NCBI GenBank assembly: GCA_977017575.1 | Contig: CDRNVI010000204.1 | Location: 1-35,765 of the forward strand | From: Paramoeba atlantica | Lineage: Eukaryota > Protista > Discosea | Length of the DNA stretch: 35,765 bases | Direction of reading: 5' to 3' | Shown here: positions 1-35,765 of the stretch, in pieces | Layout: each line of letters begins with the position of its first letter | How positions within the stretch are numbered: position 1 is the first letter of the stretch | Translations under genes and position numbers: made by a program | The notes under the pieces: model-generated | The model's database searches: none | The model's input: the letters and a program-made list of their open reading frames with translations, nothing else | What the model was told of the DNA's origin: nothing

Positions 1-759
1 AACAGTGATGGGAATATTTTTATTTGTGAATGGGAGGATGGTGGATTGAAAGTGAGAGATAAAGAAGGAAATGAGATGATTGAATCAACAATTCAGAAAA
101 CAATTGATTCATTTCAGTTGGAACCTATTGATGTTTCAATTGGATTGAATGATCAAATTGTTGTTCTTGATTGTTCTCAAGATTTTCGTCGAGTTGTAAT
201 ATTAAACAAAGAAGGAGAATTGATCAATTCTTTTGGATCAAAAGGTTCTAAAGATGGTCAGTTTGCGTCCCCGTGTGGGGTGGATGTGGATGAAGAAGGT
301 AGAATTATTGTTTGTGATACTTTGAATCAGCGAATTCAAGTGTTTGATAATGATGGATCTTTTCTTCATTCTTTTGGTTCAAAAGGTTCTTCTGAAGGTC
401 AATTTAATCGACCTTCTAGTGTTGGAGTTGATAGAGATGGGAATATTGTTATTTCTGATTCTTGGAATCATCGGATTCAAGTGTTTGATATTGAAGGGAA
501 TTTTATTCGATGTTTTGGAACAACGGGTGATTCTCAATTGGCCTCTCCAAAAGGTGTTGATGTGGATGGGGAAGGTAGAATTGTTGTTTGTGATAGAGGA
601 AATAGAAGAGTGAGTGTGTTTGAGAAAGATGGAACATTTCTTTTTTCATTTGGTAATCTGTACATGAAGTTTCCTCAAGGGATCGTTCTTGATTCATTTG
701 GAACAATTATTGTTGTAGATTATAAGAAAAAGTCAATTGAATTTTGGAAATCATTTTGA
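1..759 (+). CDS. TRIM-NHL-like paralog c1, 5'-partial (NHL beta-propeller only inside the window)
   Basis: Frame 1 is open from base 1 (NSDGNIFICEW...) to TGA at 757-759. It has repeated NHL blades (FGSKG..GQF..P.GV.VD.EGRIIV.D..N.RIQVFD) and is collinear with the seven other copies. Confidence 0.9.
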   Translation, partial: NSDGNIFICEWEDGGLKVRDKEGNEMIESTIQKTIDSFQLEPIDVSIGLNDQIVVLDCSQDFRRVVILNKEGELINSFGSKGSKDGQFASPCGVDVDEEGRIIVCDTLNQRIQVFDNDGSFLHSFGSKGSSEGQFNRPSSVGVDRDGNIVISDSWNHRIQVFDIEGNFIRCFGTTGDSQLASPKGVDVDGEGRIVVCDRGNRRVSVFEKDGTFLFSFGNLYMKFPQGIVLDSFGTIIVVDYKKKSIEFWKSF

Positions 760-1323
760 AAGGATTGAGAGGTTTTTCTTTTCTTTTCTTTTTTGATTTG
801 ATTTTTATTTTTGTTATTTATTGAAAACAAGAAATTGATATTTTTTTCTCTCTCTTTTCCCCCTCCTCCCCTTTTCTCCTTTTTAGTCTGTGGAGTTCTT
901 TTTCTTCCCAATTTTTCGCTTTGATTCTTCTCCTTCTTCCGCCTTTCCGCAGTCTTCTGACAGACCAAGAATACAGCGAGATTTGCGGAACTGGGGGAGA
1001 AACTCTTGATAAAGGGGATGGGGGAGCTGACAAAATGGAAATACTGAATATTCCTTATGACAAACAATGTTGATCCACACCTTTACATTCGCACCTTCAC
1101 TGAACTTTCATTTAAATTGCAATGCAATCGTCACATTGCGATTGTTGTCGCAATGTCTCTTGAACACAAATAATAAATCATTCTTGTTTTTCCCAATTCA
1201 ATTGGTCTCGAGGAATTAACGATTTTCCTCTAAAAACAAGAATAAAAAGGAAACGAAAATAACAAAAATAACAAAAATAATGACTTTTTTTTGAAAATCA
1301 AAAAAATAAACAAAACCTTCTCT

Positions 1324-3560
1324 TCAAAATGATTTCCAAAATTGAATTGACTTTTTCTCATAATCTGAAACAATAATTGTTCCAAATGAATCAATAACAA
1401 TCCCTTGAGGATATTTCATGTGATGTTTACCAAATGAAAAAAGAAATGTTCCATCTTTCTCAAACACACTCACTCTTTCATTTCCTCTATCACAAACAAC
1501 AATTCTACCTTCCCCATCCACATCAACACTTATTGGATAAGCGAATTGAGAAACACCTGAACCTCTTGTTCCAAAACATCGAATAAAATTCCCTTCAATA
1601 TCCATCACTTGAATTCGATGATTCCAACAATCAGAAATAACAATATTCCCATCTCTATCAACTCCAACACTGTTTGGTTGATCAAATTGACCTTCAGAAG
1701 AACCTTTTGAACCAAAAGAATGAAGAAAAGATCCATCATTATCAAACACTTGAATTTGGTGATTCAAAGTATCACAAACAATAATTCGACCTTCTTCATC
1801 CACATCCACACCACACGGACTCTTAAACTGACCATCTTCAGAACCTTTTGATCCAAAAGAATTGATCAATTCTCCTTCTTTGTTTAAGATTACAACTCGA
1901 AAAGAATCTTGAGACCAATCAAGAACAACAATTTGATCATTCAATCCAATTGAAACACCAACAGGTTTCAAATGAAGTGAATCAATTGTTTTCTGAATTG
2001 TTGATTCAATCACCTCATTTCCTTCAAAATCTCTCACTTTCAATCCATCATCATCTTCACAAATAAAAATATTCCCATCACTGTTCACACTCACTCCTAA
2101 AGGTGGATTCTTCAAAGGAAAAGAAGAAACAAAACGAAAAGAATCACCACCACTAACACCTCCTTCAGAAACAATATCAGTTGCAGTTTGAAGAAGAGTT
2201 GAAAAAAGTTGATCATCAAAAAAGAGAGAAACATCACAATCAGTTGTTGTTGTTGTTGTTGTTGTTGGTGTGTTGGATAAACGAATAATTGAATCTTTTC
2301 TTATTCTCAAATCTTCTTTCTCTAATTCTATTTCTTTCTTTTCAATTCTTTTCTTTTCTAATTTCTCTTCTAATTCTTTCATTTCTTTTTCAATCCTTTT
2401 TCTTTTCTTTTCAATCAAAACCAATCTTTTCTCCAATTTATCTCCAACCTTTACAACTTCATTCCTTTTCTCTAAAATACTTTCTTCAATCGATTTCACT
2501 TTCTCATTGTGTTGAACATGTGTTTCAAGAGCACAACGAAGACAAACAAAAGAAGAACATTGAAAACAATATCCACTGATTGTTTCAGATGGGTGTTTTG
2601 AACATTCTCTCTTCTTCAAATTCTCCAATCCCATCACTCCCACCACCCCTCCCTCCTCTTCCAATCTTCTTCTTCCACCTCCCTCAATACCATCTCTTTC
2701 ACATCGTTTGTGATTTCGAGAGAAAATAGTTGAAGTGTGAGATGGATCACAAGAATCACAAATAAACATGTTGCAAAGAGGGCAAAACATTCGAGTTTGT
2801 TCTCCACATGTTTCGAAATTCGCACATTCTGATTCATCTCCTGTTGTTTTGTTTTTTCAACTTTGAAATCACTTTCTCTCAAAAAAAGAAAGAAAAAAAA
2901 GTGAGAGTTCAAAAAAAGAAAGAAAGAAAGAAAACCTGGTTGGTGGGAGAAAGAGATCAAATTTGAAGAAAGAAGAACATCAATTGTTTCTGGAATCAAA
3001 TAATTCATCGAAAGTGTTTCAATACTTTCACATTCGTTCATTTCTCTACAAACTGGACATTTCACTCCTTTCAAAGAAGAAATGGGAGAGGGAGAAGGGG
3101 AAGAAGGAGAAGAAGAGGAAGAAGAATAAGAAGGATTTTGAAGAAGAAAGAGTTTGTTAAGACAAAGAGAACAAAAAGAAAGAGCACAACAAGGTAACAA
3201 CCTTGGTTCTTTTTCCCAACTCATCAATTCCAAACATATTCCACATTCAAATCTTTTCTTTTTCTCTTCTTCTTCCTTTCTTCTTCTTTTCATCATCTCT
3301 TCTTCTCTTTCTCTTTCTCTTTCTTCCTCTCCTTCTCCTTCATTTTGTCCCACTTGTTGTTCTCTCTTTCCAAGAACATCTTCATTTCTTCTTTCTCTTT
3401 GTTCTTTTTCACCAACATTGTCATCTTCAATTACAACAACAACATCAACATCATCTTCTTTGTCTTTCTTTCCTCTTTTGGTTTTTCTCTTTTTCTCACT
3501 TTCTAATTCTGTTCCTTGTTCTTCTCCTCCTCTTTTTCTCTTTCCTCTTTTTTCACTCAT
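1324..3560 (-). CDS. TRIM-NHL-like paralog c2 (RING, B-box1, B-box2, coiled coil, NHL); 2 exons, 713 aa
   Basis: ATG at 3560 (MSEKRGK). Exons 3560-2936 and 2840-1324 are joined by a 95-nt GT-AG phase-1 intron (2935-2841), giving a continuous frame. Motifs: RING CGIC..LPCCALSFCSLC..CPVC; B-box2 CSKH..CFQC..CLRC..HVQH; EKKR-rich coiled coil; 6 NHL blades. Confidence 0.9.
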
Positions 3561-4239
3561 TTTGTCTCTGTGTGGGGTAAAGAAATCAATCAACAAAAAA
3601 AGAAAGAAAAGAAAAGAAAAAAACAAACATTCTCTTCACCAAAGTTGAGAAAACAAAGATCAAAGACAAAGAACAAACAAAAACACCTTCCCAAAAGAAT
3701 GAACTCAAAAGAGATAGAGTGCGAGAGTGTGAGAGAAGAGGATCAACAATCAAGAAAATCGAGATGTCCCCCACAAAGCCACAAAGACACAAGAGAGAGA
3801 GAGAGAAAAAGGTTTCTGACAATTTTTCAATAAATTGAGATAAAAAAAAGAATAAAGAAGAAAAATGAAAATACAAACATCTCTCTCAGGGAAAGGATTT
3901 TTTGTTTTCAAAGAAAGAAAGAGAAGAGAAAAGAGTCCTCTCCCCCAAAAACAAAAAAGAAAACACCGATTCTTAGAGAATGTCCTCCAAAGAGAGAGAG
4001 AAAGAAAGAGGTCTGACAATTTTTTTTTTCAAAAATGGAGCAAAAAAAAGAGAAAAAAGAAAATAAAAAATACAAACCACTCCCTCAAAAAGTCAAGAAA
4101 GGATTCTTTGGCAAAGGAGAAGAAAAAGAAAGAGAAAAATCCAAACAAAAATATGAGAGAACGAGATCCCAAAAAACCTCAAAAAGAAGAAAGACAAAAC
4201 AACACAACCCCAAAAAAGAGAGGCACAAGAAACGAAATG

Positions 4240-4325
4240 AGAGAGAAGAGAGAAGAGAGAAGAGAGAGAAGAGAGAAGAGAGAGAGAAGGGAGAGAGAAG
4301 AGAGAAAAGAGAGAAGAGAGAGGGA
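4240..4325. repeat. Degenerate (GAGAGAA)n low-complexity repeat
   Basis: Tandem GAGAGAAGAGAGAA units; similar tracts occur at about 16180-16210 and 30700-30740. Confidence 0.7.
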
Positions 4326-4336
4326 AAAACGAAAAA

Positions 4337-4417
4337 GAAAAAGTTTTTGGGTGTTTTTGTGATATTTTTTTCAGAGAGAGGTTTAAAAAGTTTTGAATCC
4401 TCTTTTCATACCCTTCC
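4337..4417 (+). repeat. Conserved ~80-bp non-coding block, copy A
   Basis: GAAAAAGTTTTTGG..TTTTGTGATATTTTTTTCAGAG..GTTTAAAAAGTTTTGAATCCTCTTTTC.TA.CCTTCC; also at 19990-20067 (+) and 30603-30681 (-). Confidence 0.85.
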
Positions 4418-4877
4418 TTTTTTTTCTCTTGTTCTTTTCTGTTTTTTTCTTTTGTTCGCTTTTCTTTCTTCCACAGTGCTTGTTTTTGTCTCTCTTGTTC
4501 TTCTTTCTTTGTCTTTTTCTTAGTCTCTCGTTCTTCTTTCTTTCTCGTCTTTCTGTTGGTTCTCTCTCTCTCTTGATTTCAGTGTCACTTTTTTCATCTT
4601 TATTGTGTTCCTCTTTTTTTCTGTTTTTCTGTTTTTGTCTCTCTTGTTCTTTCTTTCTTTGTCTCTTTTTTCCTTTTGTTCGCTTTTCTTTCTTCCCCAG
4701 TGCTTGTTTTTGTTTCTCTCTGTCTTTTTCCTTTCCCTCCTTGAGTTGTTTGTATTTCCAAAATATTCTTTAAAATTCCTTTCATCTCTTAAGATCTTTC
4801 TGCAGCTCTGAGCGCTCCCTCTTTCAGAAAAAAGTTCATTTGTTTTCAAATTGTTTTGATTTTAGAGCCAAAAGATA

Positions 4878-6024
4878 ATGAGTGGACAACAAGGAAAGAG
4901 AAAGAGAGAAGTGGTGAGAACTGAAAGTGAGGAGGAGAAACGAATTTCAAAAAGAGGGAAGAAAGAACAACTTGATGATGGTCTAGAACAGAGAGAAAAA
5001 AGAAGTGAGGATGTCTCTTTCTCCAATGAATCAGGTTTTTTTTTAGAAAAGAAAAGAGTTGAAAGAAAACAACTGATTCTGATCTTCCTCTTTTTTTTTT
5101 GATGATCAACTTTTTTCAACTCTTCTTCAAACTGCAAATGATATTGTTTCTGAAGGAGGTGTTGTTGGATTACTCAAACCAAAGAAAGGGGTGATTTGTT
5201 GTGATGGTGGTGGTGATTCATCTCGTTTCGTTTCTTCTTTTCCTTTGAAGCAAGAAGTTTTAGGAGTGAGTGTGAACAGTGATGGGAATATTTTTGTTTG
5301 TGAAGGACCGCGTGGATTGAAAGTAAGAGATAAAGAAGGAAATGAAATTAAATCATTTCAGAAAACAATTGACTCTCTTCAGTTGGAACCTGTTGATGTT
5401 TCAATTGGATTGAATGATCAAATTGTTGTTCTTGATCATTCTCAAGATTCTTTTCGAGTTGTAATGTTAAACAAAGAAGGAGAATTGATCAAATCTTTTG
5501 GATCAAAAGGTTCTAAAGATGGTCAGTTTAATGGACCGTGTGGGGTGGGTGTGGATGAAGAAGGTAGAATTATTGTTGCTGATACCGAAAATAATCGAAT
5601 TGAAGTGTTTGATACTGATGGATCTTTTCTTCATTCTTTTGGTTCAAAAGGTTCTTCTGAAGGTCAATTTGACCAACCAAACAGCGTCGGAGTTGATAGA
5701 GATGGGAATATTGTTATTTGTGATAGTTGGAATCATCGGATTCAAGTGATGGATATTGAAGGGAATTTTATTCGATGCTTTGGAACAAGAGGTTCAGGTG
5801 TTTCTCAATTAAAGTCTCCAAAAAGTGTTGATGTGGATGGGGAAGGTAGAATTGTTGTTTGTGATTCAGGAAATGGAAGAGTGAGTGTGTTTGAGAAAGA
5901 TGGAACATTTCTTTTTTCATTTGGTAAACGCCACTTGAAAGGACCTTTTGGGGTTGTTATTGATTCATTTGGATCGATTCTTGTTTCAGATTGGCGGAAA
6001 AAGTCAATTGAATTGTGGAAATAA
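4878..6024 (+). pseudogene. TRIM-NHL paralog c3 with RING, B-boxes and most of the coiled coil deleted but an intact NHL domain; either a pseudogene or an NHL-only gene
   Basis: The N-terminus MSGQQGKRKRE resembles c4. It is followed by remnants of the exon-1 end and donor (AATCAG|GT, 5034/5035), of the coiled coil (ttagaaaagaaaagagttgaaag) and of the TD.D linker. The frame breaks by 1 nt at the T10 run 5091-5100. The frame is then open from 5101 to 6024 and encodes the full propeller. Confidence 0.7.
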
Positions 6025-6485: not shown

Positions 6486-8244
6486 TTATTTCCACCATTC
6501 AATTACTTTTTCCTCCTTGTCAACAACAATAATGGACCCAAAAGAATCAAGAACAATCCCACGAGGTCTTTTCATGTGATGTTTACCAAATGAAAAAAGA
6601 AATGTTCCATCTTTCTCAAACACACTCACTCTTTCATTTTTCCATTCAGAAACAACAATTCTACCTTTCCCATCCACATCAACACTTCTTGGACACTCCA
6701 ATTGAGAATCACCTGAACCTCTTGTTCCAAAACATCGAATAAAATTCCCTTCAATATCCATCACTTGAATCCGATGATTCCAATAATCACAAATAACAAT
6801 ATTCCCATCCCCATCAACTGTAACAGCATAAGGTTTGTTAAACCGACCTTCAGAAGAACCTTTCGAACCAAAAGAACGAAGAAAAGATCCATCATTATCA
6901 AACACTTGAATTCGATGATTGAAAGTATCTGCAACAATAATTCGACCTTCTTCATCTACCCCAACTCCCCATGGTCCACTAAATTGACCATCTTTAGAAC
7001 CTCTTGATCCAAAAGATTTGATCAATTCTCCTTCTTTGTTCAATATTACAACTCTCCTCGATTTTGACCAATCAAGAACAACAATTTGATCATTCAATCC
7101 AATTGAAACATCAATAGGTTCCAATTGAAGTGAATCAATTGTTTTCTGAATTGTTTCAATTGTGTTCCCTTCTTTATCTCTCACTCTCAATCCATCATTT
7201 TCACAAAGAAAAAAAACCCCATCTCTGTTCACACTCACTCCAAAAGGTTCATCCTTCAAAGGAAAAGAAGAAATAAAACGAAAAGAATCACCACCACCAT
7301 CACAACAAATCACTCCTTTCTTTGGTTTTGGGAATAATCCAACTTCAGAAAGAATCTCATTTGCAGTTTGAAGAAGAATCGAAAAAAGTTGATCATCAAA
7401 AAAAAGAGAAGGATTAGTTGTTGTTGGGGTGTTGGATAAACGAATAATTGAATCTTTTCTGATTCTCAAATCTTCTTTCTCTAATTCTATTTCTTTCTTT
7501 TCAATTCTTTTCTTTTCTAATTTCTCTTCTAATTCTTTCATTTCTTTTTCAATCCTTTTTCTTTTCTCTTCAATCTCAATCAATCTTCGGTCCAATCGAT
7601 CTCCAATCTTTACAACTTTATCCCTTTTCTTCAATACACTCTCTTCAATCGATTTCACTTTCACTTTGTGTTTAACATGAGTTTCAAGAATACAACGAAT
7701 ACAAACAAAAAGAGAACATTGAAAACAATATCCACTGATTGTTTCAGATGGGTGTTTTGGACATTCTTTCATCAACTCATTCCATCTCTCATCACTCCCA
7801 TCTCTCCCATCAGTCCTTGAAAAGTTGATCTTGGTTCGTTGTTCACGTTTGTGATTTCGAATGAAAATAGAAGAAGTGTGAGACGGATCACAGGAATCAC
7901 AGATCAACATATTACAACTGGGGCAGAACATTTCAGTTCGTTCTCCACACGTTTCAAAATTCACACATTCTGATTCATCTCCTGTTTTTTTATGTTTTTC
8001 AATCAAAACTGAATTTGAGAAAAGAAGAAAAAAGGGGAAAATGAAAAAAAAAAAGGAACCTGGTTGGGATAAAGAGATCAAATTTGAAGAAAGAAGAACA
8101 TCAATCGTTTCCGGAATTAAGTAATTCATCACAAATATCTCAATGCTTTCACATTCGTTCACTTGACTGCAAACTGGACATTTCACTCCTTTCAAAGAGG
8201 ATGAAGAAAAAGACGAAGAGGAAGAGGGAGAGGGAGAAGGGGAA

Positions 8245-8275
<31 letters not shown>

Positions 8276-8693
8276 GATTTTGAAGAAGGAAGAGGTTGTT
8301 AAGACAAAGAGTACAAAAAGAAAGACCACAACAAGGTAACAACCTTGGTTCTTTTTCCCAACTCATCAATTCCAAACATATTCCACATTCAAATCTTTTC
8401 TTTTTCTCTTCTTCTTCCTTTCTCCTCTTCACCACTACTTCTTCTCTTTCTCTTTCTCCTTCATTTCCTCCCACTTCTTGTTCTCTCTTTCCAAGAATAT
8501 CCTCAATTCTTCTTTCTCTTTGTTCTATTTTATCATCCTCTTCTTCAATCACATCAACATCAACATCAACATCATCACAATCTGTTGTTTGATCTCTTCG
8601 TTCTTTTTCGTCATCACTTTTTCTTTCAATTTTTCTTTTCTTTCCCTCACTCTCACTTTCGACTCCTTCTCTCTTTCTCTTTCCCTCACTCAT
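6486..8693 (-). CDS. TRIM-NHL-like paralog c4; 2 exons, about 709 aa after splicing
   Basis: The 735-aa ORF includes an in-frame 78-nt GT-AG intron (8059-7982) at the same position as in c2, c6 and c7. All RBCC and NHL motifs are present. Confidence 0.9.
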
Positions 8694-8993
8694 TCAGATA
8701 TCAACAAAAAAAGATCTGAATCAAGAATTGTTGTTGGTAAGAAAAGAGAAGAAAAAACACCTGAAAAGAAAAAAACAAACATCAGAAACAAAGAATCAAG
8801 AGAAGGGAGATAATTTTGTGGGAGAAAAGCTCGTCGAGTCGAGAATAAAGAAGCGGTCAAAAAAAAAGAAGAAAAAACCAAACTCTTAGAGAAGAGAAAA
8901 GTGAAAAAAGCCAACAAAAAAAAGAGCCAGTGGCCATTTTTTAGAGTTCTTTTTTTAGCTTTTTTCTATTTCTTTTTCTGTTTGTTTTTTCAA

Positions 8994-9831
8994 ATGGACG
9001 AAAATCGTGTGTTGTTGGACCAGTTGATGGGGATCGACAGAACTGGAGACCTTCTTGAAACGAATGAGGTTCTCAGGATCGATGATCCTGATGTTTGTAA
9101 AAACTATTTGTGTGGATTCTGTCTTCCTGAACTTTTTGCCAATACAAAGAGCGCGCTCGGTTTGCCTTTTGTTGTTGTTTTCTTCTTTCTGTTTCTGTTT
9201 CTGAGGGGCACTGACTCCCCTTTTTTTTTTGTCTTAGAGCCTTGTTTGAAAAAACATGATCATTTTCTTCAACAAGAATATCAACAGATGCTTGCACTTG
9301 GAAAAACCACCGAATACGGTTATGAGTTTGATTTTCTTCAAGAACTCGAGGCTCTCGTTAAAGTTCGAGATCGAAAGTTTTTTTCTTCTTTGTTTTTTCC
9401 CTTTTTCTTCTTTTGTTTTTGAAAGGAAAAAACTGACTTTGATTCTTCAAAGGGTCAAGCAAATCAAAGAAAGAATCGGAGAAGACAAGGTAGGGTTCTC
9501 GTTCTTGAGCCGCTTCTACATTTTTTCAAAAAATTGAGAGCTTTTTCACAGAATCAACCTGATGTTCTCACTCTGAAAGTTTGTGAGGAATGTGGAGGGA
9601 TAATGGCTTCAAACGACTCAGAAGATCGAATTCAAAGTCATCTACAAGGAAAACATCATCTTGGTTTTGTTCGAATTTGCGAAACAATTAAAGAACTGAA
9701 GGTTTTCTTTTCATTTTTGTCTTGTTTTTCTTTGTTTTTTTTTTGGTGGTTGTTGTTGCTTTAATTTTTCATGGTAGATGGTGAATCTCAAACCTGCAAA
9801 GAGAGAGGCTGGTGGTTCTGATGAGTCTTGA
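8994..9831 (+). CDS. LUC7: LUC7-family U1 snRNP protein, miniature; 5 exons, about 181 aa
   Basis: Motifs: MDENRVLLDQLMG, ZnF1 VCKNYLCGFC...PCLKKH, ZnF2 VCEECG...SHLQGKHHLGF. Exons 8994-9159, 9238-9376, 9453-9489, 9552-9701 and 9778-9831 total 546 nt in frame. CTGAC branch sites are present in introns 1 and 2. Confidence 0.85.
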
Positions 9832-9968
9832 CTCAAAGAAAAGCAGGAAAAGAGAAGCAATTTATTTTTTTGCAGGTTTGATATTCACTTTCCTGGACCT
9901 TGGTTTCCCTTTTGCCTGAGAGATGAAAAGGGTGAGAAAAAGAAAAGAACCAACAAAAAAAGAAGAGG

Positions 9969-10672
9969 TCAAACCTCCACCCAGATGGTTAAGTTATCTC
10001 TCATGAGTTGCAATGACACACATGCTTCTTTATATGAGTCTTCATCAATCGTGTCCAACTCTCCAATCGCACTATCAAACCCCTCCTTGGTCATTTTGAT
10101 TGCTTTGTCTTCCTCTTCTTCATCCCAAAGAAACATTGAATAATAAAGAACACAACGCAACCGAGTGCTCTGAGTGCTGTGCAAATCACTCAAACAAATC
10201 TTCAGCGATTGTTCATAATATTTCCGAGCCTCTTCAGGTTCATATGTTGTGTGATTTACACGCCCCTGATTGTGATTGGAATGAATCACAAAAAAAGAAA
10301 AAGAGAAAGAGGAAAAAATTACCAGCATCCAATAAATGGAGGCCAAGAATTCTGGGTGAGAGGTTGATTGGTGGTTGACCCAAGAGTTGAAAACAGATTT
10401 GGTCAACTCAACAATCTTTTGGTTCTCATCAAATATTGGATCCCCTTCTTTTTCGAATGTTCCTGTGGTAAGAATCACCTGTTTTTCGTTATTATCCTGC
10501 GCGAGAGAAACCAGAAAGAAAGAGAAAAGAACAAAACCAACTGTTCCAGTGTATCAATAGAATCCCAGTCTGAGTTTGCTTGAATTCTCGGAAGAGCTTC
10601 AAGCAAAAGAACACTCTTCTTTTTCTTCACTCCTTCTTTCACTTTTGCCCAAGAATCATCCTCATTGGCCAT
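9969..10672 (-). CDS. Divergent 14-3-3-like protein; 3 exons, about 201 aa
   Basis: The C-terminal part (..RLRCVLYYSMF..FDSAIGELDTIDEDSYKEACVSLQLMRDNLTIW) matches the 14-3-3 helix 7-9 signature. Exons 10672-10538, 10496-10323 and 10265-9969 join in frame with phase-0 introns. Confidence 0.75.
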
Positions 10673-11018
10673 TCCTTCCCTTTGTTGATAAGAGAATCAA
10701 GAAGAATCCCGAGAAGAAAATCCAAAAGAGAAAGGCGTGTCCAAAGGTGGTGAAACGTGATCATGAGAAAAAACAGATTCAGAGAAAAGAAAAGTTGTTC
10801 TCACAATTGCAAAACTCACCCACCTCTCTTGTTTTCCTCTCTTTCCGCAAGTTGCGAACAACAAAAAATGAAATCCAGGAAAATCCAACCCAAGTTCCTG
10901 GAACTTTTGCTTTTTTTTTTTTCTTTCTTTCCTTTTTCGCTTTTGCCACCTTTTTCTTTTTCGTCTTTTTCGTCTTTTTCTCTTTCTCTCTTTTGTTTGT
11001 TTGTGTGAGTCTTGAAAA

Positions 11019-13451: not shown

Positions 13452-13695
13452 AAAAAAATTTTGATCAAGAGCCATCGAAAGAATGGATCTCTTTTCCCCA
13501 AGTCGAAGGACAACACAAAAATATTTTTTTTCCTTTTTTTTGACTTTAAATGTGGTTTTGAGAGGAGAGTTTTGGCTTTTGTTTTGTGTTATTTTGAAAG
13601 GTCGAGCTTGTGAATCACAACAATGAGGGTTTTTGGGTGGTGATGGAAGAAGAGAAATGACACAAAAAAAAAATGCAATAAAATTTCATTTCTTC

Positions 13696-15842: not shown

Positions 15843-16674
15843 ATCAATGGATCGAGATTGTCCTCCCCCCATTCTCCCCACACATCAGTTTAAACGGTCC
15901 TCTTTTCTCTTTCTTTTTCTCTTCTTTTTCCAAGAACCGAAACAAAACAAAATTAACCAGAACAAATTTTTTTCATCCCGTGTTCAATTCCCTTTCGGGA
16001 TTCTTTTTTTTTCCTTTTTTTTCTTTTTTTTTCGTTTTTTTTGTTTTTCCTCCCTCTTCTTCTCTTTTCTCTTCTCTCTTTCTTTTCTCTTTTGTCTCTG
16101 ATTTTTTTTTTGGGATCACATTCTTTGGAAAAAACCTCAAGACAGCTTTTTTTGTTTCTTTTTCTTCTCCATTTTCCCTCCTCTTTTCTCTCTTCTCTCT
16201 CTTCTCTCTCTTTCTTTGTGCCTCTCTTTTTGGTCTTTTTGGGGTTGTTTTTGTCTTTCTTCTTCTTCTTTTTGAGGTTTTTGGTTTTTGGGATCTCGTT
16301 CTCTCATCTTTTCGTTTGAATTGTCTTTCTTCTCCTTCTTCTTTGGTGGTTCCTCACTTTTTGAGAACTGTTTGTCTTTTTTCTTCTTTTTTTCTTTTTT
16401 TTTCTCAATTTATTGAAAAAACAATTCTCAGAAACCTCTTTCTCTCTCTCTCTCTTTGTGGGGACATCTCTATTTTCTTGATTGTTCCTCATTTTAATTT
16501 GTTTTGGGTCTCAGCAGTCTTTTTGTGTGTGTGTGTGTATGTGTTGGGTGGGCATAGTTTTGGTTTCGTTTTCTTTTTCTTTTTCATTTCATTCGAATTT
16601 TGTGTGTGTGATTTTTAATTGTTTTTTCCCTCCCTCACATTTCTTTTCTTTTCAATCCCACAGAGAGAGACAAA

Positions 16675-18822: not shown

Positions 18823-18829
18823 AAGAGAT

Positions 18830-20067: not shown

Positions 20068-20072
20068 TTTTT

Positions 20073-25664: not shown

Positions 25665-26125
25665 TTCGTTCATTTCTCTACAAACTGGACATTTCACTCC
25701 TTTCAAAGAAGAGGAGGAAGGAGAGGGAGAAGAAGAGGAAGAGGAAGAGGAAGGATTTTGAAGAAGTAAGAGTTTGTGGAGACAAAGAGTACAAAAAGAA
25801 AGAGCACAACAAGGTAACAACCTTGGTTCTTTTTCCCAATTCATCAATTCCAAACATATTCCACATTCAAATCTTTTCTTTTTCTCTTCTTCTTCCTTTC
25901 TTCTTTTCATCATCTCTTCTTCTCTTTCTCTTTCTTTTTCTCTTTCTCTTTCATTTTGTTCCTTTTCATCATCATCATTATCTTCAATCACAACAACATC
26001 AACATCATCACCACAATCTGTTGTTTGATCTTCTTTCTCTTTCTTTCCTCTTTTGGTTTTTCTCTTTTTCTCAGTTTCTAATTTTCTTCCTTCTTCTCCC
26101 CCTCCTCTCTTTCTCTTTCCTCTTT

Positions 26126-26352
26126 TGTGAATAACGGAAATTATCGACCCTCCGATCTTTTGGCCCAACTCTTGGCCAAATCCCAAACCTTTGGCTAGTA
26201 TTCTTGGCCTGCTTCAGCGAATCACCTCGACGGGGACCATTTGATGACATCAGCCCGCGACGCGTTCCTCTCGCGCCTTTTCACATTTTCTCGCTTTCTT
26301 GCGATTTGCATAAACTAGTTTTCCCACACAGACAAACCTTTCAGTTTTTACA
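26126..26352 (+). repeat. 5' LTR
   Basis: TGTGAATAAC...TTTTACA; 226/227 identical to 29791-30017 (single C/A difference at 26342/30007). Confidence 0.95.
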
Positions 26353-26353
26353 T

Positions 26354-26364
26354 TGGCGACGCTG
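26354..26364 (+). promoter_or_regulatory. Primer-binding site (TGGCGACGCTG)
   Basis: TGG lies 1 nt after the 5' LTR and is complementary to a tRNA 3' end ...CAGCGUCG-CCA. A tRNA-Ser-like primer is only an inference. Confidence 0.75.
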
Positions 26365-26639
26365 TACGATTCGAAGAGCAATGACTGACACGATTGATGA
26401 GGAAATCACACCGGATGAAAGGATGGTAGTCCAAGTGGAACCCACCTTCACCGGGAATGAGATCCGAGAAATGGAATCAGAACAGAGGCTGGGGCAAGGC
26501 AATTGAAGACCCATCCCCAACAGTCTCAACAAAGCTTCAAGCTCACCAAGCTCATCAAGCCCATCAGGAGCCCCTTGGTAAGAATGGGAACAATCCCATC
26601 AACCCAGCGGCAGCCACAAGGGGCCAGGATACAAGAGAA

Positions 26640-28830
26640 GGCACTGGCTTGTTGTGGTGCCAGGTCTCTCAACACAAATCATTTTCGGGCGCCCAATTAT
26701 GAAGAAAATTGGCATGGTGCTTGATTTTGATCAAAACACAATCGAAATTCGGAAATTAACACAAGGGATTCTCTGATTCCCAATGGAAATGGGAATGGAC
26801 AAAAGAGTTCAGGTAATGATTCCACTCAATAATGAAGGGGAATTGTGGGCAGCAGAAAGACTCACCCTCAAACCTCGACAAGTGCACAGAATCAGGGTAA
26901 ACCTAAAAAAAAGTGTAATCAACCTTCCTTGCATACTGGATTTATTATGCCTGTGGAACGAACTGGCTCACGTCTAATCGTGTTACCAGGATTAGTTTCA
27001 ATGCAGATCGATCAGTTCAAAAATTATTTCATGGAACTAAGTGATAAATCCAACGGAAAGACCAAATAACATAAATCCAAAAACAATAATCACACACCAC
27101 CGATACCTGACACAAGAGGATGTCAACCAAACAGTTGTAAAGAAAATAACGGATGAAATATCCATGAATTAAATAAAGAAGCAACAACAAAAAAAAAAAA
27201 AAAAAAAAAAACTGAACAAAGAAGCGATCAGAGCAAAAAGGAACTCTTGGAAAGAGTATTTGCTCAGGAGGATTGCCACGATAAAGACCTCAAGACGAGC
27301 TATGAAAAAATTCCAGAGAAAGAGTGTACAGACTCAGCTTCCATGACATGTGCCATGTGTTCACTGATGAACACCCATCCTCGGGAACACTCAATCCAAA
27401 GAATTGGGAAACACAACTCAATCAACGGTAGACAGAGTGAATCAAAACAAAGACTGGAAGTAATGGAGAAGACAGGACTCTCCCAAGCTGACCTCACAAT
27501 GGAGGAAAAGATTCAGCTGGCAGACCTCTTCATTAGATTCCGGGGCACAAGAACAAGAGATTGAATCAAACAGCAAATTGAGGACAGACACATCGAAAGT
27601 ATGTTACAAAGAGGAGTGATACAACCCTCTCAATCAGCTTTCGCAAGCCCAATTATGCTGGCGGTAAAACCCCCAGGAAAAAAGATAAGATTCTGTATTG
27701 ATTACCGAAATCTGAACACAAAAACAGTCAAATGGAGTTACCCATTGCCAAAAATAAATGATGTTTTAACATACCTGGGTGGATCGAAATACTTTTCAAC
27801 CCTTGATATGACAGAGGCCTTTTGGTCAATCCTGATAAGAAAGGAAGATCGCCACAAAACAGCATTTGTATCAAGGAGCGGACTGTGGGAATGGATCTCA
27901 ATGCCATTTGGTCTCACAAACACCCCAGCAACACAACAGAGATTTATGGACATGATCCTAGCTGGACTCCGGTGGGAAACATGCATTGTGTATGTTGATG
28001 ATATTGTCGTTTTTTTTTTTCGAAAGATTTTAAAACACATTATGAGACTCTGGAAGAAACATTGACAAGATTAGAAAAACACAAAGTAAGGATTAACATT
28101 TCTAAAGTTCATTTGTGCAAACCGAAATTCATGCTTCTGGGATATACGGCATCCAAAGAAGGCATTGAAGCAAATAGTGCCAAGGTTGAAGCAATTGCAA
28201 ACTACACAACACCAATAAACCACAAGGAATTACAAACATTTCTTGGGGTTGTAAGCTGGTGTCGGAGATTCATTTATAAATGCTCACAAAGAACATTTAA
28301 TATGAGACAACTCCTAAAAGAGAAAAAATTTGAATGAGACAAAGAATTTCAAGAGATGAAAAAAAGAATCAAAGAGATACCTCCGTTGGTACATCCTGAT
28401 TTCAAGAAAACATTCCATATTCATGTTGATGCCTCAAAGAAAGGATACGGAGCAATATTGACACAAAGACCAAACGACCCAGTTGGAAGACAAGCAGATC
28501 TCCCACAGGGAATACCAAAAGATCACAGAATTATAGCCTTTGCAAGCTCAGCGCTGCCAGCAACTCACACTGGATACACTAACCCAGAAAGAGAGTGTTA
28601 TGGGTTGTACTGGGTGACAGAAAAGTTCAAGGAGTTTATCCAGGGATGTGATGTGGTTGCATTTACCAACCACCATAGCCTGAGAGACTTGAGCAATTCA
28701 ATGAAGGAATCCAGAAGCAGCATGATATACAATTGGCTGATCAACATATCCCAAATGGTGAGACAAGTTCTCCATAAACCAGGGAAAACATTGGTAATTC
28801 CAGATGCCCTCAGTAGAGCGCATGTGGAAT
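26640..28830 (+). pseudogene. pol: Degenerate pol: C-terminal retropepsin remnant, reverse transcriptase and RNase H
   Basis: Protease remnant VVPGLSTQIIFGRPIMKKIGMVLDF. RT motifs ASP, RFCIDYRNLN, FSTLD, MPFGL and YVDD (27601-28010), with a frameshift at the T-run 28011-28020 and a TGA in place of Trp at 28335-37. RNase H motifs VDASKKGYGA, ERECYG and VIPDALSR. Confidence 0.9.
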
Positions 28831-28990
28831 ACAAGATCAAAGAACAAAGGACAACCGAAGAGTTGTTAAAGGATCTAATAGGAACAGAAAGTTCAGGAAG
28901 AGAACAGATTAATGAAACAGTCACAAAATTATGCAAAATGGACACAAATCAACAAAAAGATGTACCTCAAAACTGCAAATCAGGTCATGC

Positions 28991-29164
28991 TGGGAGAACT
29001 GGTAAGTCCGATATTTCGGCCCTGGCTTCACTGGATGATCGAGAATTGACAGTAGTGGGGGTACCAACAGAGGAAAGAATAAAGCAGAATACTTTGGCTG
29101 GCAAAGACCAGCTCAGGGAGATGGGAGAACTGGTAAGTCCGAAATACTCGGCCCTGGCTTCACT
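28991..29164 (+). repeat. Two ~42-bp direct repeats inside the retroelement
   Basis: TGGGAGAACTGGTAAGTCCGA-(TATT/AATAC)-TCGGCCCTGGCTTCACT at 28991-29032 and 29122-29164. Confidence 0.85.
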
Positions 29165-29778
29165 TCGAACTGAGGAAATGCAAGGTATCCACCAGAGGGG
29201 GCCAGAAATAGACCCAGGAAACTGGCTAAGTACAGCTTCATCCGCAGGATGTTCCGCTTGGAAAAGCCCTGTTACTCCCCGGCATCCCCACCTCACCAAA
29301 AACAGATCAGGGCATGTGCAGCGCAACACATGGACCCCACCAAGAGTCTAGAAAGGACTGAACGACAGAAAAAAACCCATTTTGCAAACAAATAAGAGAA
29401 TTTCTCCAGGAACAGAAGCTTCCCAGGAACAAGAAGTCAATGGGGCTCAACTCAGACCAAACAAGATGAGAGTGAGCACCCCATCTAAAGAGGGGGGGGA
29501 CACCATTTGAAAGAAGATTCACAAATGGAATGATCAGTAACACCCTCCGAAACATCTCTGAACCCACACAAAAAGAAGAAGTCCAAGAAGAAACAAATCT
29601 TTTCCAAATATTAACCCAAAAATAACAAAACACAGGTAACAGGTAACCCAACAGATCTGAAACCCTTCAAGGTATTCTAACACTTCGCACACGACCACCA
29701 CGAACGAAGAAGACGACACACCGAGAGGATTACAACAACGAAGAATTTAAAGATTGACGTGGGACACGTCTTTGGCTC

Positions 29779-29790
29779 AAGGGGGGAGGA
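29779..29790 (+). promoter_or_regulatory. Polypurine tract
   Basis: AAGGGGGGAGGA directly abuts the 3' LTR. Confidence 0.85.
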
Positions 29791-30017
29791 TGTGAATAAC
29801 GGAAATTATCGACCCTCCGATCTTTTGGCCCAACTCTTGGCCAAATCCCAAACCTTTGGCTAGTATTCTTGGCCTGCTTCAGCGAATCACCTCGACGGGG
29901 ACCATTTGATGACATCAGCCCGCGACGCGTTCCTCTCGCGCCTTTTCACATTTTCTCGCTTTCTTGCGATTTGCATAAACTAGTTTTCCCACACAGACAA
30001 ACCTTTAAGTTTTTACA
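29791..30017 (+). repeat. 3' LTR
   Basis: 227 bp, TG...CA, near-identical to the 5' LTR. Confidence 0.95.
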
Positions 30018-30602
30018 CTTTTTTCACTCATTTTATCTCTGTAAGGAAAAAGGGATCAATCAACAACATAAAAAGGAAGAAGAGTGAAAACAAAAAAAAA
30101 CAAAAGAAGAGAAATGTGAGGGGGAAAAACAATAAAATCATCCACATCCAAAAAAAATGAAAAAGAAAAAGAAAAAGAAAAAGAAAATGAAAAAAATCAA
30201 ACCAAACCAACAAAAAGAGACTCTCAAACCCACACAAATTCGCACAAAGCGAAAGAGAGGGAGAGAGAGGAAGAGAGAAGAGGTTCTGATAATTTTTTTT
30301 TTCAAAAAAAAATTGAGCAAAAGATATCAGAAAAAAATAGAAAAAAAAAAGAAAAGGAAAAAAAAGAAAAATACAAACATCTCTCAAAAAAGTCAGGAAA
30401 GAATTCTTTTTTTCAAAAGAAAGAGAAGAGAGAAGCAAAAACAAAAAGCAAACAAAAACGAGGCCAAAAAAACAAAACTAAAAAAGAGAGAAAAGGAACA
30501 GACACTTAAATCAAGAGAGAGAGAACAAAGGAAAAAAGAGAGAGAACAAAAGAACAAGAGAGACAAAGAAACAAGAAAAACAGAAAAAAAAGAGAAAAAA
30601 AA

Positions 30603-30681
30603 GGAAGGGTACGAAAAGAGGATTCAAAACTTTTTAAACCTCTGAAAAAAATATCACAAAAAACACACCAAAAACTTTTTC
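30603..30681 (-). repeat. Conserved ~80-bp non-coding block, copy C
   Basis: Reverse complement of copies A and B. Confidence 0.85.
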
Positions 30682-31001
30682 TTTTTCGTTTTTCCCTCCT
30701 CTCTTCTCTCTTCTCTCTTCTCTCTCTCTTCTGTCTTCTCTCTCGTTTGGTTTCTTGTGCCTCTCTTTTTTGGGGTTTTGTCTTTCTTCTTTCTTCTTTT
30801 TGAGGTTTTTCGGGTTTGGTTTTGGTTTTTTGGGATCTTGTTCTCTCTCATATTTTCGTTTGGATTTTTCTCTTTCTTCTGGTGGTGTTTTCTTTTCTCT
30901 TCTCTTTCTTTCTTTGAAACAAAAATCCTTTCCTGACTTTTTTGCGAGAGATGTTTGTATTTTTCATTTTTAGTCTGAAAAAACTGTCAGAAACCCCTTT
31001 T

Positions 31002-31258
31002 TGTCTGCTTGTGAGCACCTTAGTCTTAAGGTGTGACTCTTAACCAATCGATGGATGACACGTCTTCAGTGACACCTCCGATCGGACGGACAACCAACCA
31101 TCTGGCGACACGTCAGCGGATGACACCTTGTCTACAAACCCTCGATTGGGACAATTTTGATGACATCACAAAAGGTGACGCGACGAGACGGCGATTTTCA
31201 TTCTCTCGTTTTCCCTTTATCAAAGAAGTTTTTCCGCACACACCACTTTTGCTTCACA
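31002..31258 (+). mobile_element. Probable solo LTR of a family related to the 26126-30017 element
   Basis: GC-richer island sharing GACA/CCCTCCGATC, GAC.ATTT(T)GATGACATCA, GACGCG and TTCTCGYTTTC motifs with the LTRs. Boundaries are ambiguous: 31002-31245 with a CTTTT/CTTTT duplication, or 31010-31258 by end homology without a TSD. Confidence 0.6.
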
Positions 31259-31368
31259 GGTTTGTTTGTTTTTTTTTTTTTTCTTTTTTTTGTGTGGGGG
31301 ATTGATTATTTTTTACTTGTTCTCAGGGATCTTCAACTCCGATCTTTTTTGTTTGGATGGACTTGAAA

Positions 31369-33425
31369 ATGAGCGAAGGAGAAAGAGAAAGAGAAAGAGA
31401 AAGAGAAGAAGAGATGATGGTGAAAAGAAGAAGAAAGGAAGAAGAAGAGAAAAAGAAAAGATTTGAATGTGGAATATGTTTGGAATTGATGGGTTGGGAA
31501 AAAGAACCAAGGTTGTTACCTTGTTGTGCTCTTTCTTTTTGTACTCTTTGCCTCAACAAACTCTTTCTGATTCAAGATCCTTCTTCATCTCCCTCTTCTT
31601 CTTCTTCCCCTTCTTCATCCTCTTTGAAAGGAGTGAAATGTCCAGTTTGTAGAGAAATGAACGAATGTGAAAGCATTGAAACACTTTCGGTGAATTATTT
31701 GATTCCAGAAACGATTGATGTTCTTCTTTCTTCAAATTTGATTTCTTTATCCCAACAATCAGGTTTTCTTTATTTTTTAATGTTTGATTTTCTTTTTTCT
31801 TTCATTTTTTCTTTTTTGAGTAATTTGACCCACCCAACCCCCTGCTGTTGTACCCTTCACTGACTTATTTTCTTCTTTTTGAAACAACAAAATACAAATT
31901 AGGAGAAGTTCAATGTGTGAGTTTCGAAACGTGTGGAGAACAAACTCGAATGTATTGTTCTGATTGTAAAGTCTTTATTTGTGATTCTTGTGATCTGTCT
32001 CACTCCTCTTCTATTTTCACTCGAAATCACAAACGATCTGAAAGAAATGGAAGATTGGAGGAAGAGGGGGGAGTGGTGATGGTGGGGTTGGAGGATTTGA
32101 AGAAGAGAGAATGTTCAAAACACCCATCTGAAACAATCAGTGGATATTGTTTTCAATGTTCTTCTTTTGTTTGTCCTCGTTGTATTCTTGAAACTCACGT
32201 TCAACACAAAGAGAAAGTGAAATCGATTGAAGAAAGTATTTTAGAGAAAAGGAATGAAGTTGCGAAGATTGGAGATAAATTGGAGAGAAGATTGATTGAG
32301 ATTGAAGAAGAAAGAAAAAGGATTGAAAAAGAAATGAAAGAATTAGAAGAGAAATTAGAAAAGAAAAGAATTGAAAAGAAAGAAATAGAATTAGAGAAAG
32401 AAGATTTGAGAATCAGAAAAGATTCAATTATTCGTTTATCCAATACCCCAACACCAACAACAACAACAACAACTGATTGTGATGTTTCTCTCTTTTTTGA
32501 TGATCAACTTTTTTCAACTCTTCTTCAAACTGCAACTGATATTGTAGGCGTTGTTGGATTCCTCAAACCAAAGAAAGGAGTGATTTGTTGTGATGGTGGT
32601 AGTGATTCTTTTCGTTTTGTTTCTTCTTTTCCTTTGGAGAATGAACCTTGGGGAGTGAGTGTGAACAGTGATGGGAATATTTTTATTTGTGAAGAGGATG
32701 GTGGATTGAAAGTGAGAGATAAAGAAGGAAATGAGATGATTGAATCAACAATTCAGAAAACAATTGATTCACTTCAATTGGATCCTGTTGATGTTTCAAT
32801 TGGATTGAATGATCAAATTGTTGTTCTTGATTGGTCTCAAGATTGTCGGAGAGTTGTAATATTAAACGGAGAAGGAGAATTGATCAAATCTTTTGGATCA
32901 AAAGGTTATGAAGATGGTCAGTTTAAAGATCCATATGGTGTGGATGTGGATGAAGAAGGTAGAATTATTGTTGTTGATACTTGGCATCCTCGAATTCAAG
33001 TGTTTGATAATGATGGATCTTTTCTTCATTCTTTTGGTTCATTAGGTTCTTCTGAAGGTCAATTTAATCGACCTTCGAGTGTTGTAGTTGATAGAGATGG
33101 GAATCTTGTTATTTCTGATTCTTACAATAATCGAATTCAAGTGATGGATATTGAAGGGAATTTTATTCGATGTTTTGGAACATATGGTTCAGGTGATTCT
33201 CAATTAATTTGTCCAAAAGGTGTTGATGTGGATGGGGAAGGTAGAATTGTTGTTTGTGATAAAGGAAATGAAAGAGTGTGTGTGTTTGAGAAAGATGGAA
33301 CATTTCTTTTTTCGTTTGGTGAAGATCACGTGGAGAATCCTTTTGGGATTGTTATCGATTCATTTGGAACAATTATTGTTTCAGATTGTGACAAAAATTC
33401 AGTTGAATTTTGGAAATCATTTTGA
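31369..33425 (+). CDS. TRIM-NHL-like paralog c7 with a short N-terminus; 2 exons, about 638 aa
   Basis: Exons 31369-31762 and 31903-33425 with a 140-nt phase-1 intron join in frame. An upstream in-frame ATG at 31357 is also possible. Confidence 0.88.
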
Positions 33426-34585
33426 AAAGAGATGGAGGTTTTTTCATTTTCTTTTTCCTTTTTTTCAATTTTTTGTTTATTTTCAGTTGATTTATTAACA
33501 CCTTCTCTTTCTCCTCCCTCTCTTTCTCTTTCTTTTAGTCTCTGGGAACACAAAATGTCGGGGGGTGTTCTTATTCCCAATTTTTCGCTTTGATTTTAAT
33601 TCTCCTCCTTTCGAACCTTTTTTTCGATTTGCTCCCACAAGACCAATATTATATGACTCTCTCTCTTCTTTCTCTCTCCTCTCCTCCTCTCCCTCACTTC
33701 CACTCTCCCTTTGTCTGTTTCTTATCTCTCTTCTTTCTTCTTCTCTTTCTTTTCTTCCTTTTCTTTCTTTCTTCATCTCTCAATTTTGTTGTTTCTTTTT
33801 GTTTTTGATGTGGGGGGGAATTTTCTCAATTCTGATCCATTTGTAGAAATACAATTTCTCAATGTTTTTATCAAAATAAAATTTCATTTTTCCCGAAATT
33901 GTGTTTCTCTCATTCAATCAACCAAAATATGAATTCCTCCTCCAACAACAAAAAAAAAGAAAAAAAAAGTTGTTTTTGAGCTTTGAAAGAGTGTTCTTGT
34001 TGAGTTTGGGTATTATTCATTCCACCAAATAAAAAGATGAATCAACAAAAATTTCAACAAAAAGACCGGGCAACAAAAAAGAATCATTTCTTTTTAACAA
34101 CAACAAAATTTGAAGAAAACAAAAAAAGAAAAATAATTTCAATCAAAAAAAAACAGAAGAGGAAGAGAAGAGGAGATCAAAAACACAAAACACAACAACA
34201 CAACAACAAAACTCAAAAATGAAGAGGAGAAACAAAATTAAAGAAAACTGTTTTTGAAGAAGACGAAGGATCAAAAATTGAATCAAAAATTGGAAGAAGA
34301 AGAATGATGATGATTTTGGGGGGGAAGAAGAAGACCACACCACACCACAACAGAGACTAAAAAGGAGAAAAGGGAGGAGGGGAGGAAGGGGAGGAAGGGG
34401 GAAAAGAGAAAAGAAGAGAAAAAAATTAACTTCTTGTTTTTAATTTTCTTCAAACAAAAAAGGAAAACAAAAAGAAAAAAGAAAGAAAAAAATTGATACA
34501 AAATAATAAAATAAAACAAATCAAATCAAAAAAGAGAAAAAAAAGAGAAAGAAAATGAAAAAAAAAATCAAACCTTTTCCTTCAC

Positions 34586-35765
34586 TCAGTTCCAAAATTC
34601 AATTGACTTTTTGTTATAATCTGAAACAATAATTGTTCCAAATGAATCAACAACAACCCCATAAGGATTCACCATGTGAGGTTTACCAAATGAAAAAAGA
34701 AATGTTCCATCTTTCTCAAACACACTCACTCTTTCATTTCCTCTATCACAAACAACAATTCTACCTTCCCCATCCACATCAACACCTCCTGGACCTTTGA
34801 ATTGAGAATCACCTGAACCTCTTGTTCCAAAACATCGAATAAAATTCCCTTCAATATCCATCACTTGAATTCGATGATTCCCAAACTCACAAATAACAAT
34901 ATTCCCATCTCTATCAACTCCAACCCGTCTGGTTGATCAAATTGACCTTCAGAAGAACCTTTTGAACCAAAAGAATGAAGAAAAGATCCATCATTATCAA
35001 ACACTTGAATTCGATGATTGTAAGTATCAACAACAATAATTCTACCTTCTTCATCCACATCCACACCACATGGGGTCTCAAACTGACCATCTTCAGAACC
35101 TCTTGATCCAAAAGATTTGATCAATTCTCCTTCTTTGTTTAATATTACAACTCTCCGACAATATTGAGAATAATCAAGAACAACAATTTGATCATTCAAT
35201 CCAATTGAAACATCAACAGGTTTCAAATGAAGTGAATCAATTGTTTTCTGAATTGTTGATTCAATCATCTCATTTCCTTCTTTATCTCTCACTCTCAATC
35301 CATCCTCCACCCATTCACAAATAAAAATATTCCCATCACTGTTCACACTCACTCCACAAGGTTCATTCTTCAAGGGAAAAGAAGAAACTAAACAAAAAGA
35401 ATCACCACCACCATCACAACAAATCACTCCTTTCTTTCCAAATAATCTGTCAACACCTCCTTCAGAAACAATATCATTTGCAGTTTGAAGAAGAGTTGAA
35501 AAAAGTTGATCATCAAAAAAGAGAGAAACATCACAATCAGTTGTTGTTGATGTTGTTGTTGGTGTGTTGGATAAACGAATAATTGAATCTTTTCTTATTC
35601 TCAAATCTTCTTTCTCCAATTCTATTTCTTTCTTTTCAATTCTTTTCTTTTCTAATTTCTCTTCTAATTCTTTCATTTCTTTTTCAATTCTTTTTCTTTT
35701 CTTTTCAATCTCAATCAATCTTTTCTCCAATCTATCTCCAATCTTTACAACTTCATTCCTTTTCT
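34586..35765 (-). pseudogene. TRIM-NHL-like paralog c8, 5'-partial, with a 1-nt frameshift in NHL blade 4 (real lesion or homopolymer error)
   Basis: Coiled coil plus NHL frame runs to ...GQFDQPDG, then shifts at the C3 run 34924-34926. The remainder (ICEFGNHRIQVMDIEG...EFWN*) continues in another frame to TGA at 34586. Confidence 0.75.

Follow-up and report, generated by a model that had tools for sequence, protein, structure and literature searches.

Proteins that couple a RING finger, a B-box and a coiled coil (the RBCC module) to an NHL beta-propeller are viewed as a small set of developmental regulators, conserved and found in animals only, and Marín's survey describes TRIM subfamily C, the TRIM-NHL group, as animal-only (PMC3503706). 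The class VII members TRIM32, Drosophila Thin (Abba) and C. elegans NHL-1 have no filamin domain and carry a RING, a B-box and a coiled coil followed directly by a six-bladed NHL propeller; their genes are conserved and single-copy. Here we analyze a stretch of 35,765 nucleotides (nt) from Paramoeba atlantica (contig CDRNVI010000204.1; hereafter the window), which holds eight copies of a gene encoding proteins of this type. In the explanation that we favor, with a confidence somewhat better than even, the window samples a large family of clustered two-exon genes that are gained and lost by birth and death in an AT-rich eukaryote and whose products expose one fast-evolving, selected propeller face on a conserved scaffold, as expected of a recognition repertoire. 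Neither diversifying selection on NHL domains nor the expansion of TRIM-NHL genes into arrays was described in the literature that we searched.

The window is eukaryotic in composition, AT-rich (~34% GC) and has short GT-AG introns. A tblastn search with the longest open reading frame (ORF), that of copy c5, reveals eight copies of the gene on both strands within 36 kb:

c1, positions 1-759, forward strand: 3' part of exon 2, with NHL blades 1-6 and the stop codon, truncated by the start of the window (tblastn, ORF).
c2, positions 1324-3560, reverse strand: full gene; exon 1 at 3560-2936, intron at 2935-2841, exon 2 at 2840-1324.
c3, positions 5101-6024, forward strand: NHL-only fragment starting at the equivalent of c5 amino acid (aa) 405, without RING, B-box or coiled coil.
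c4, positions 6486-8693, reverse strand: full gene; exon 1 at 8693-8060, in-frame intron at 8059-7982, exon 2 at 7981-6486.
c5, positions 16675-18822, forward strand: full gene; exon 1 at 16675-17197, in-frame 60-nt intron at 17198-17257, exon 2 at 17258-18822.
c6, positions 21495-30031, reverse strand: exon 2 at 23062-21495, intact and open; intron at 23154-23063; exon 1 (ATG at 30031) interrupted twice.
c7, positions 31357-33425, forward strand: full gene with a short N-terminus; exon 1 at 31357-31762, intron at 31763-31902, exon 2 at 31903-33425.
c8, positions 34586-35765, reverse strand: exon 2 from the coiled coil onward, stop codon included, truncated by the end of the window.

Family genes encode, in this order, a RING-like finger, two B-boxes, a putative coiled coil and a six-bladed NHL propeller. 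Exon 1 specifies a charged N-terminus and the RING-like finger; exon 2 specifies the two B-boxes, a coiled-coil stretch, a poly-Thr linker and the propeller (about 17983-18819 in c5). Introns range from 60 to 140 nt and are in frame by chance in c4 and c5. Protein searches recovered about 86 close relatives (45-94% identity), all unnamed and all in one ENA assembly, on contigs of 7-100 kb. Each of the seven contigs that we fetched holds three to five further paralogs, some of them broken, and the family numbers at least about 80 members. Most copies of exon 2 keep an open frame. Signs of birth and death are seen in the c3 fragment, whose stop codon comes two codons early, in a 1-nt frameshift in blade 4 of c8 (near 34921-34924) and in the two insertions into c6 exon 1. 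The most diverged of the window copies is c4. In c2, 16 residues (about ...VGLLKPKKGVICCDGG...) that all other copies retain are missing at the border between linker and propeller, with the frame still open.

The next-best protein matches, at 36-40% identity and in the propeller only, are bacterial NHL proteins, insect nhl-1 (the best named matches in the databases) and TRIM71; with the RBCC part as sole query, protein searches found no relative outside the family. Pfam recognizes the NHL domain (E value 3.4e-29), and AlphaFold2 models c5 residues 425-715 as six blades of four strands with a mean predicted local distance difference test score of 95.3. The 23 best Foldseek matches to this model are all TRIM-NHL propellers, led by Thin/TRIM32, TRIM71/LIN-41, TRIM2/3, Brat and Mei-P26 (template modeling (TM) score ~0.8, 25-35% identity). 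Among PDB structures, Thin/TRIM32 is the best match both by sequence (6d69, 357 bits) and by fold (TM score 0.83, 33% identity). A Pfam scan of the window gave no SPRY match, and the C-terminal domain is an NHL rather than a B30.2 (PRY-SPRY) domain. Upstream of the propeller, zf-B_box scores 28.4 bits in c5 and 36.6 bits in c4 against a cut-off of 24.1, with a weaker, ANCHR-like B-box preceding it, and a putative coiled coil is visible in the alignment as an invariant Lys/Glu-rich stretch of ~80 residues (c5 aa 310-390).

The RING-like finger has eight invariant Cys and no His, in the arrangement C-x2-C-x14-CC-x4-C-x2-C, a poly-Ser loop, then C-x2-C, and its zf-RING_2 score of 22.5 bits lies below the cut-off of 27.3. 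A more distant subfamily in the same assembly (54% identity) has a canonical C3HC4 RING (...PCGHSFC...) and clear RING matches. The comparison of RING exons covers 16675-17197, 8060-8693, 2936-3560 and 31357-31762 of the window and 2255-2935 of contig L008. In the subfamily of the window, the canonical C-G-H is replaced by C-C-A-L (...PCCALSFC...), with the His lost and one residue added. The loop between the sixth and seventh Cys is poly-Ser/Pro and of variable length.

Architecture and predicted fold would place the family with the class VII TRIM-NHL proteins, nearest to TRIM32/Thin, the RING assignment being inconclusive. The Paramoeba family differs from TRIM32, Thin and NHL-1 in that it has more than 80 paralogs, arranged in clusters and hypervariable on one face, as well as two B-box-like fingers, a RING without its His ligand and an RBCC part without relatives outside the family; furthermore, its host is probably not an animal. 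Like these three proteins, and unlike LIN-41/TRIM71 and Brat, it has no filamin domain.

Positive selection at a subset of propeller sites is strong and real. We codon-aligned 19 intact exon 2 sequences (five from the window, a second allele of c5 and 13 others) and analyzed them with a Goldman-Yang likelihood program of our own. Codon frequencies were F3x4, the topology came from IQ-TREE, and the branch lengths obtained under M0 were rescaled when the site models were fitted. Over the 278 propeller codons, twice the log-likelihood difference (2ΔlnL) between M1a and M2a is 264, with 13% of sites at a non-synonymous to synonymous rate ratio (ω) of 5.2 and a posterior above 0.95 at 28 sites. The corresponding value is 280 for M7/M8 and 236 for M8a/M8. 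As a null control, eight data sets simulated under the fitted M1a gave M1a/M2a likelihood ratio statistics of 0-4.3. With separate trees for each blade, five of six blades are significant by M1a/M2a and the statistics sum to 209.5; with the eight window copies alone, 2ΔlnL is 106.8 and 11% of sites are at ω 7.4. Overall, ~11-13% of propeller codons evolve at ω ~5-7. The selected codons in c5, in the numbering of the unspliced ORF, are aa 456, 458, 473, 474, 500, 519, 522, 524, 542, 551, 569, 589, 598, 600, 615, 616, 636, 643-645, 647, 662, 665, 682, 687, 689 and 704. A preliminary description of this DNA, drawn from its letters and open reading frames, had proposed diversifying selection at variable sites on a common RBCC module. 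Both parts are borne out: M1a/M2a and M7/M8 are strongly significant with a selected class at ω ~5, and purifying selection acts on the RBCC part and, within the propeller, on the scaffold and on the loops of the bottom face. In the B-box/coiled-coil part, M0 gives ω 0.33 and M1a/M2a yields two selected sites; the eight RING Cys are invariant.

The selected sites concentrate on one side of the propeller. By strand topology of the predicted model, 23 of the 28 lie in the D-A and B-C loops (ω 0.94 by likelihood), five in strands (ω 0.33) and none in the A-B and C-D loops (ω 0.36); the enrichment in D-A and B-C loops is significant (Fisher p 8e-9), and four of the five strand sites immediately follow the conserved Pro where strand A begins. 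D-A and B-C loops make up the top face in the usual propeller convention. Each blade has three selected spots, the x-x-P-x entry to strand A, the D-x-x-N turn (B-C) and the G-S-x-G-S turn after strand D, and in the predicted model all three belong to the D-A and B-C loops, which make up the canonical ligand-binding face. The preliminary description had recognized the first two as its sites (a) and (b), and a MAFFT alignment of the translations reproduces every one of its four-residue lists for blades 3-6 and its D-x-x-N lists, as well as the loop indels in blades 1-2. Its count of two hypervariable sites per blade does not hold, a third variable spot being the x of G-S-x-G-S (c5 aa 542, 589, 636 and 682 at the selected positions).

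Independent support for the selected spots lying on a ligand face comes from homology to LIN-41 and Brat, in which the same fold contacts ligands on its upper face at x-P and D-x-x-N, the positions that vary in the Paramoeba family. The RNA contacts of zebrafish LIN-41 are R564, R581, R611, K628, D629 and Y658 (PMC5908797). An offset of 415 puts all six on matching residue types in the 6fpt chain, and they map to the residue before the Pro of x-x-P-x and to the first two residues after the Asp of D-x-x-N, that is, to sites (a) and (b). The proposal that the variable sites share one face thus agrees with both the loop distribution and the contact homology.

The same homology would fit another explanation, in which the proteins regulate endogenous transcripts at the post-transcriptional level, as LIN-41 or Brat do, with each paralog binding different RNAs of its own cell, and divergence reflects subfunctionalization. 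Consistent with this, RNA-binding NHL domains, those of TRIM71, Brat and Mei-P26, are among the best structural matches. However, LIN-41 and Brat offer RNA a conserved, electropositive upper face, whereas the homologous Paramoeba positions are hypervariable, aromatic-rich and charge-variable. Across 62 paralogs, selected positions accommodate up to 14 residue types each and are enriched in Tyr (7.8-fold), Trp (6-fold) and His (2.8-fold); net charge over 27 of them (the 28 less the C-terminal one) ranges from -6 to +6 with a mean of +0.6, and is thus not uniformly basic. In addition, ω ~5 and allelic hypervariability would be unusual for housekeeping regulators, and the closest relative is Thin/TRIM32, which we take to be a protein-binding member of the TRIM-NHL group. 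We regard regulation of endogenous RNAs as improbable. By analogy, the pattern at selected positions is closer to that of protein-binding paratopes than to the faces of LIN-41 and Brat, which are uniformly basic. Because these positions are Tyr/Trp-rich and charge-variable, varied and probably protein ligands would be favored over RNA alone.

Allelic comparison, another of the checks suggested at the outset, points the same way as the site models. Over 7343-19612 the window has a counterpart in contig L001, a second haplotype or strain, with 98.4% identity; divergence is ~0.4% in the flanks versus 2-4% in c5. The two c5 alleles differ by 33 non-synonymous and 8 synonymous codon changes overall and by 15 and 0, respectively, in the NHL part, where the differences include N-D-P-Y versus K-S-P-C in blade 3. 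Of the 43 bases that differ, 36 have in L001 a state that occurs in other paralogs as well, and a cluster of variants at aa 537-553 of the L001 c5 matches c2. Furthermore, synonymous diversity is patchy along the exon. It is ~0, against a mean of 0.105 among 18 paralogs, at c5 aa 502-511, 532 and 622-631 (about 18178-18207, 18268 and 18538-18567 in the window, and the same columns in other paralogs), which could reflect homogenization by gene conversion or constraint at the nucleotide level.

Taken together, the states shared between alleles and paralogs and the patchy synonymous diversity suggest short gene-conversion tracts between paralogs. A recombination test of the pairwise homoplasy index (PHI) type was not significant (p 0.9), incompatibility being already 51% at all distances, so that gene conversion is inferred from the shared states rather than demonstrated. 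We rejected mutagenesis directed at adenines, as in diversity-generating retroelements, because variation at selected codons extends to all four bases and all three codon positions. A 45-nt stretch that the preliminary description had singled out is indeed identical in seven of the eight copies (c7 is off by 2 bases; chance expectation 0). As a special nucleotide element it was rejected: its synonymous diversity in the wider family, ~0.10-0.13, is near the exon mean of 0.105.

False mosaics and alleles could in principle arise from the collapse of paralogs, or from chimeras between them, during assembly. The family is highly repetitive, and L001 comes from a metagenome-style assembly. Yet an independent assembly matches 12.3 kb of the window at 98.4% identity, c4 and c5 included, a transcript contig matches the neighboring genes at 99.3-100%, and the region is present in five sequencing runs, which makes an artefact scarcely credible.

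Allelic divergence of this kind also bears on the nature of the antagonist. The 15 non-synonymous and 0 synonymous changes in the c5 NHL part, the states common to alleles and paralogs, and clusters interspersed with mobile elements would all fit a conflict other than infection, be it self/non-self or mating-type recognition, toxin-antidote or drive elements, or transposon control, acting on the same fast-evolving face. None of these observations separates pathogens from other antagonists. More than 80 paralogs is, however, more than typical allorecognition or drive loci have, and no partner gene is seen in the window; we give such conflicts a real but distinctly minor share of probability.

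Several results weigh against reading these proteins as selected, ligase-borne recognition surfaces. Across all 88 top-loop codons, ω is 0.94, not above 1. For the youngest pairs, likelihood (F3x4) gives pairwise ω of 1.2-1.7, which is not significant; the Nei-Gojobori (NG86) estimate for young pairs is 2-3.6, and the discrepancy indicates that the NG86 values are method-dependent. We dropped the idea of a domain-wide dN/dS above 1, which by likelihood is only about 1, and the case for selection therefore rests on the site classes. Site-model tests, in turn, can be inflated by recombination; tree resolution is poor, and 51% of informative site pairs are incompatible by the four-gamete test. 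Residue classes follow from the strand topology of the model and from homology, not from coordinates. In the RING, loss of the His ligand and the Pfam score below cut-off speak against taking ligase activity for granted. Finally, protein searches with family queries found no family member of at least 393 aa from the species' JGI transcriptome. A scan of metagenome contigs for a 29-nt core of the conserved stretch gave 0 matches, but so did a control pattern taken from the known JGI transcript, whose sample is absent from that collection, so that the scan does not bear on expression.

Some of these points would also be expected if there had been no adaptive diversification at all, and unconstrained loops on a framework homogenized by gene conversion merely mimicked hypervariable sites. 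Synonymous diversity is patchy and near zero in some framework stretches, trees are unresolved with pervasive site incompatibility, and ω is ~1 over the whole top-loop partition. Relaxation does not easily account for the preference of M8 over M8a, in which ω is fixed at 1, by a 2ΔlnL of 236 with a selected class at ω ~5, nor for a signal that persists with per-blade trees. Bottom-face loops, which are equally exposed, have ω 0.36; residue usage at selected sites is non-random, and most exon 2 copies keep open frames. This makes an entirely non-adaptive origin very unlikely.

Returning to the recognition repertoire, the proposed function has parallels among other ubiquitin-ligase families. Two reports on teleost finTRIMs and on primate TRIM5alpha/TRIM22 describe clustered expansion and positive selection in C-terminal-domain loops (PMC2657112, PMC3845644). 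With these families the Paramoeba genes share a TRIM chassis, a lineage-specific clustered expansion and positive selection in the loops of a C-terminal recognition domain, here its ligand-binding loops. The variable module is B30.2/PRY-SPRY in the vertebrate proteins and an NHL beta-propeller in the Paramoeba family; an antiviral role is documented for the former and would be a candidate role for the latter. The MATH-BTB and F-box families are likewise large families of ubiquitin-ligase components that combine a conserved ligase-docking part with a positively selected substrate-binding part. A 2006 study by Thomas in Genome Research reportedly found the substrate-binding part of these adapter families to be selected in nematodes and plants, and proposed that they target pathogen proteins. 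Their folds are different and they act as cullin adapters, whereas the Paramoeba proteins are predicted to resemble single-chain RING ligases.

In the favored explanation, paralog-specific binding surfaces on a shared, putative oligomerizing and ubiquitin-ligase chassis would form a recognition repertoire. New surfaces may arise by point substitution and be reshuffled among paralogs and alleles by short gene-conversion tracts, along with a steady gain and loss of copies. The selective agent would most likely be fast-evolving foreign or conflicting molecules. Because the selected positions are rich in Tyr and Trp and vary in charge, and because similarity is closest to TRIM32/Thin, proteins would be likelier targets than RNA; once bound, targets may be ubiquitinated or sequestered. 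An immune-like set of E3 ligases, as the preliminary description put it, would be a plausible reading.

Other features of the window are the following:

LUC7-like gene, positions 8999-9764, forward strand: several exons, introns of 60-77 nt; Pfam match; transcribed (spliced JGI transcript L009).
Divergent 14-3-3-like gene of 195 aa, positions 9776-10837, reverse strand: two introns of ~55 nt; transcribed (L009).
Second insertion in c6, positions 23255-25664: 2.4 kb, in the RING exon between ...REMNE and CESVE...
Long terminal repeat (LTR) retrotransposon, positions 26126-30017, forward strand: Ty3/gypsy-type reverse transcriptase and RNase H ORFs, two identical 227-nt LTRs, in c6 exon 1.

The LUC7-like and 14-3-3-like genes lie between c4 and c5 and converge so tightly that a single 1431-nt transcript contig, L009 (JGI sample 3300017035, which looks like a marine protist culture transcriptome), covers both; its exon identity to the two genes is 99.3-100%, and it confirms introns of 55-77 nt. 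Intron donors in these genes are sequences such as GTTTTG and GTAATT rather than GTAAGT. With the 14-3-3-like ORF as query, only itself and one JGI transcript were found. The retrotransposon (3.9 kb, TG...CA ends, GC 42% versus 34% around it) sits after c6 codon 5, and the 100% identity of its 227-nt LTRs indicates a very recent insertion. The 2.4-kb insertion has a near-palindromic 17-nt motif (CGATTTTTGA[G/A]AA[A/T][A/T]CG) near each end (23263-23279 and 25639-25655) and no recognizable ORF, and may be a non-autonomous DNA transposon. Long GA/CT-rich low-complexity tracts occupy intergenic DNA at 3650-5100, 15980-16620 and 30150-30650, where they create, on either strand, spurious ORFs of 150-210 aa rich in Lys/Glu/Arg or in Phe/Ser/Leu; c3 starts abruptly, right after one of these tracts.

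The family and its site-specific selection are well supported; the immune-like reading is no more than plausible. We advance only tentatively the wider picture of a marine microbial eukaryote, probably not an animal, with a cell-autonomous recognition system of 80 or more TRIM-NHL proteins whose antibody-like faces have been diversified by selection and by gene conversion among paralogs and alleles. If this is true, TRIM-NHL proteins predate animals or arose outside them, and evolution has turned a beta-propeller into a hypervariable receptor module. Ubiquitin-ligase families that combine a conserved chassis with a selected recognition domain are known from TRIM5alpha, finTRIMs, nematode MATH-BTB and F-box proteins; what is new here is the use of the NHL propeller face, the surface that binds RNA in LIN-41, as the hypervariable module, in more than 80 copies and in a genome of protist-like appearance. 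Should the proposed function hold, the family would represent an independent invention of a germline-encoded receptor repertoire; its propellers would amount to a natural library of binding surfaces, and direct tests of innate recognition in a microbial eukaryote would become possible.

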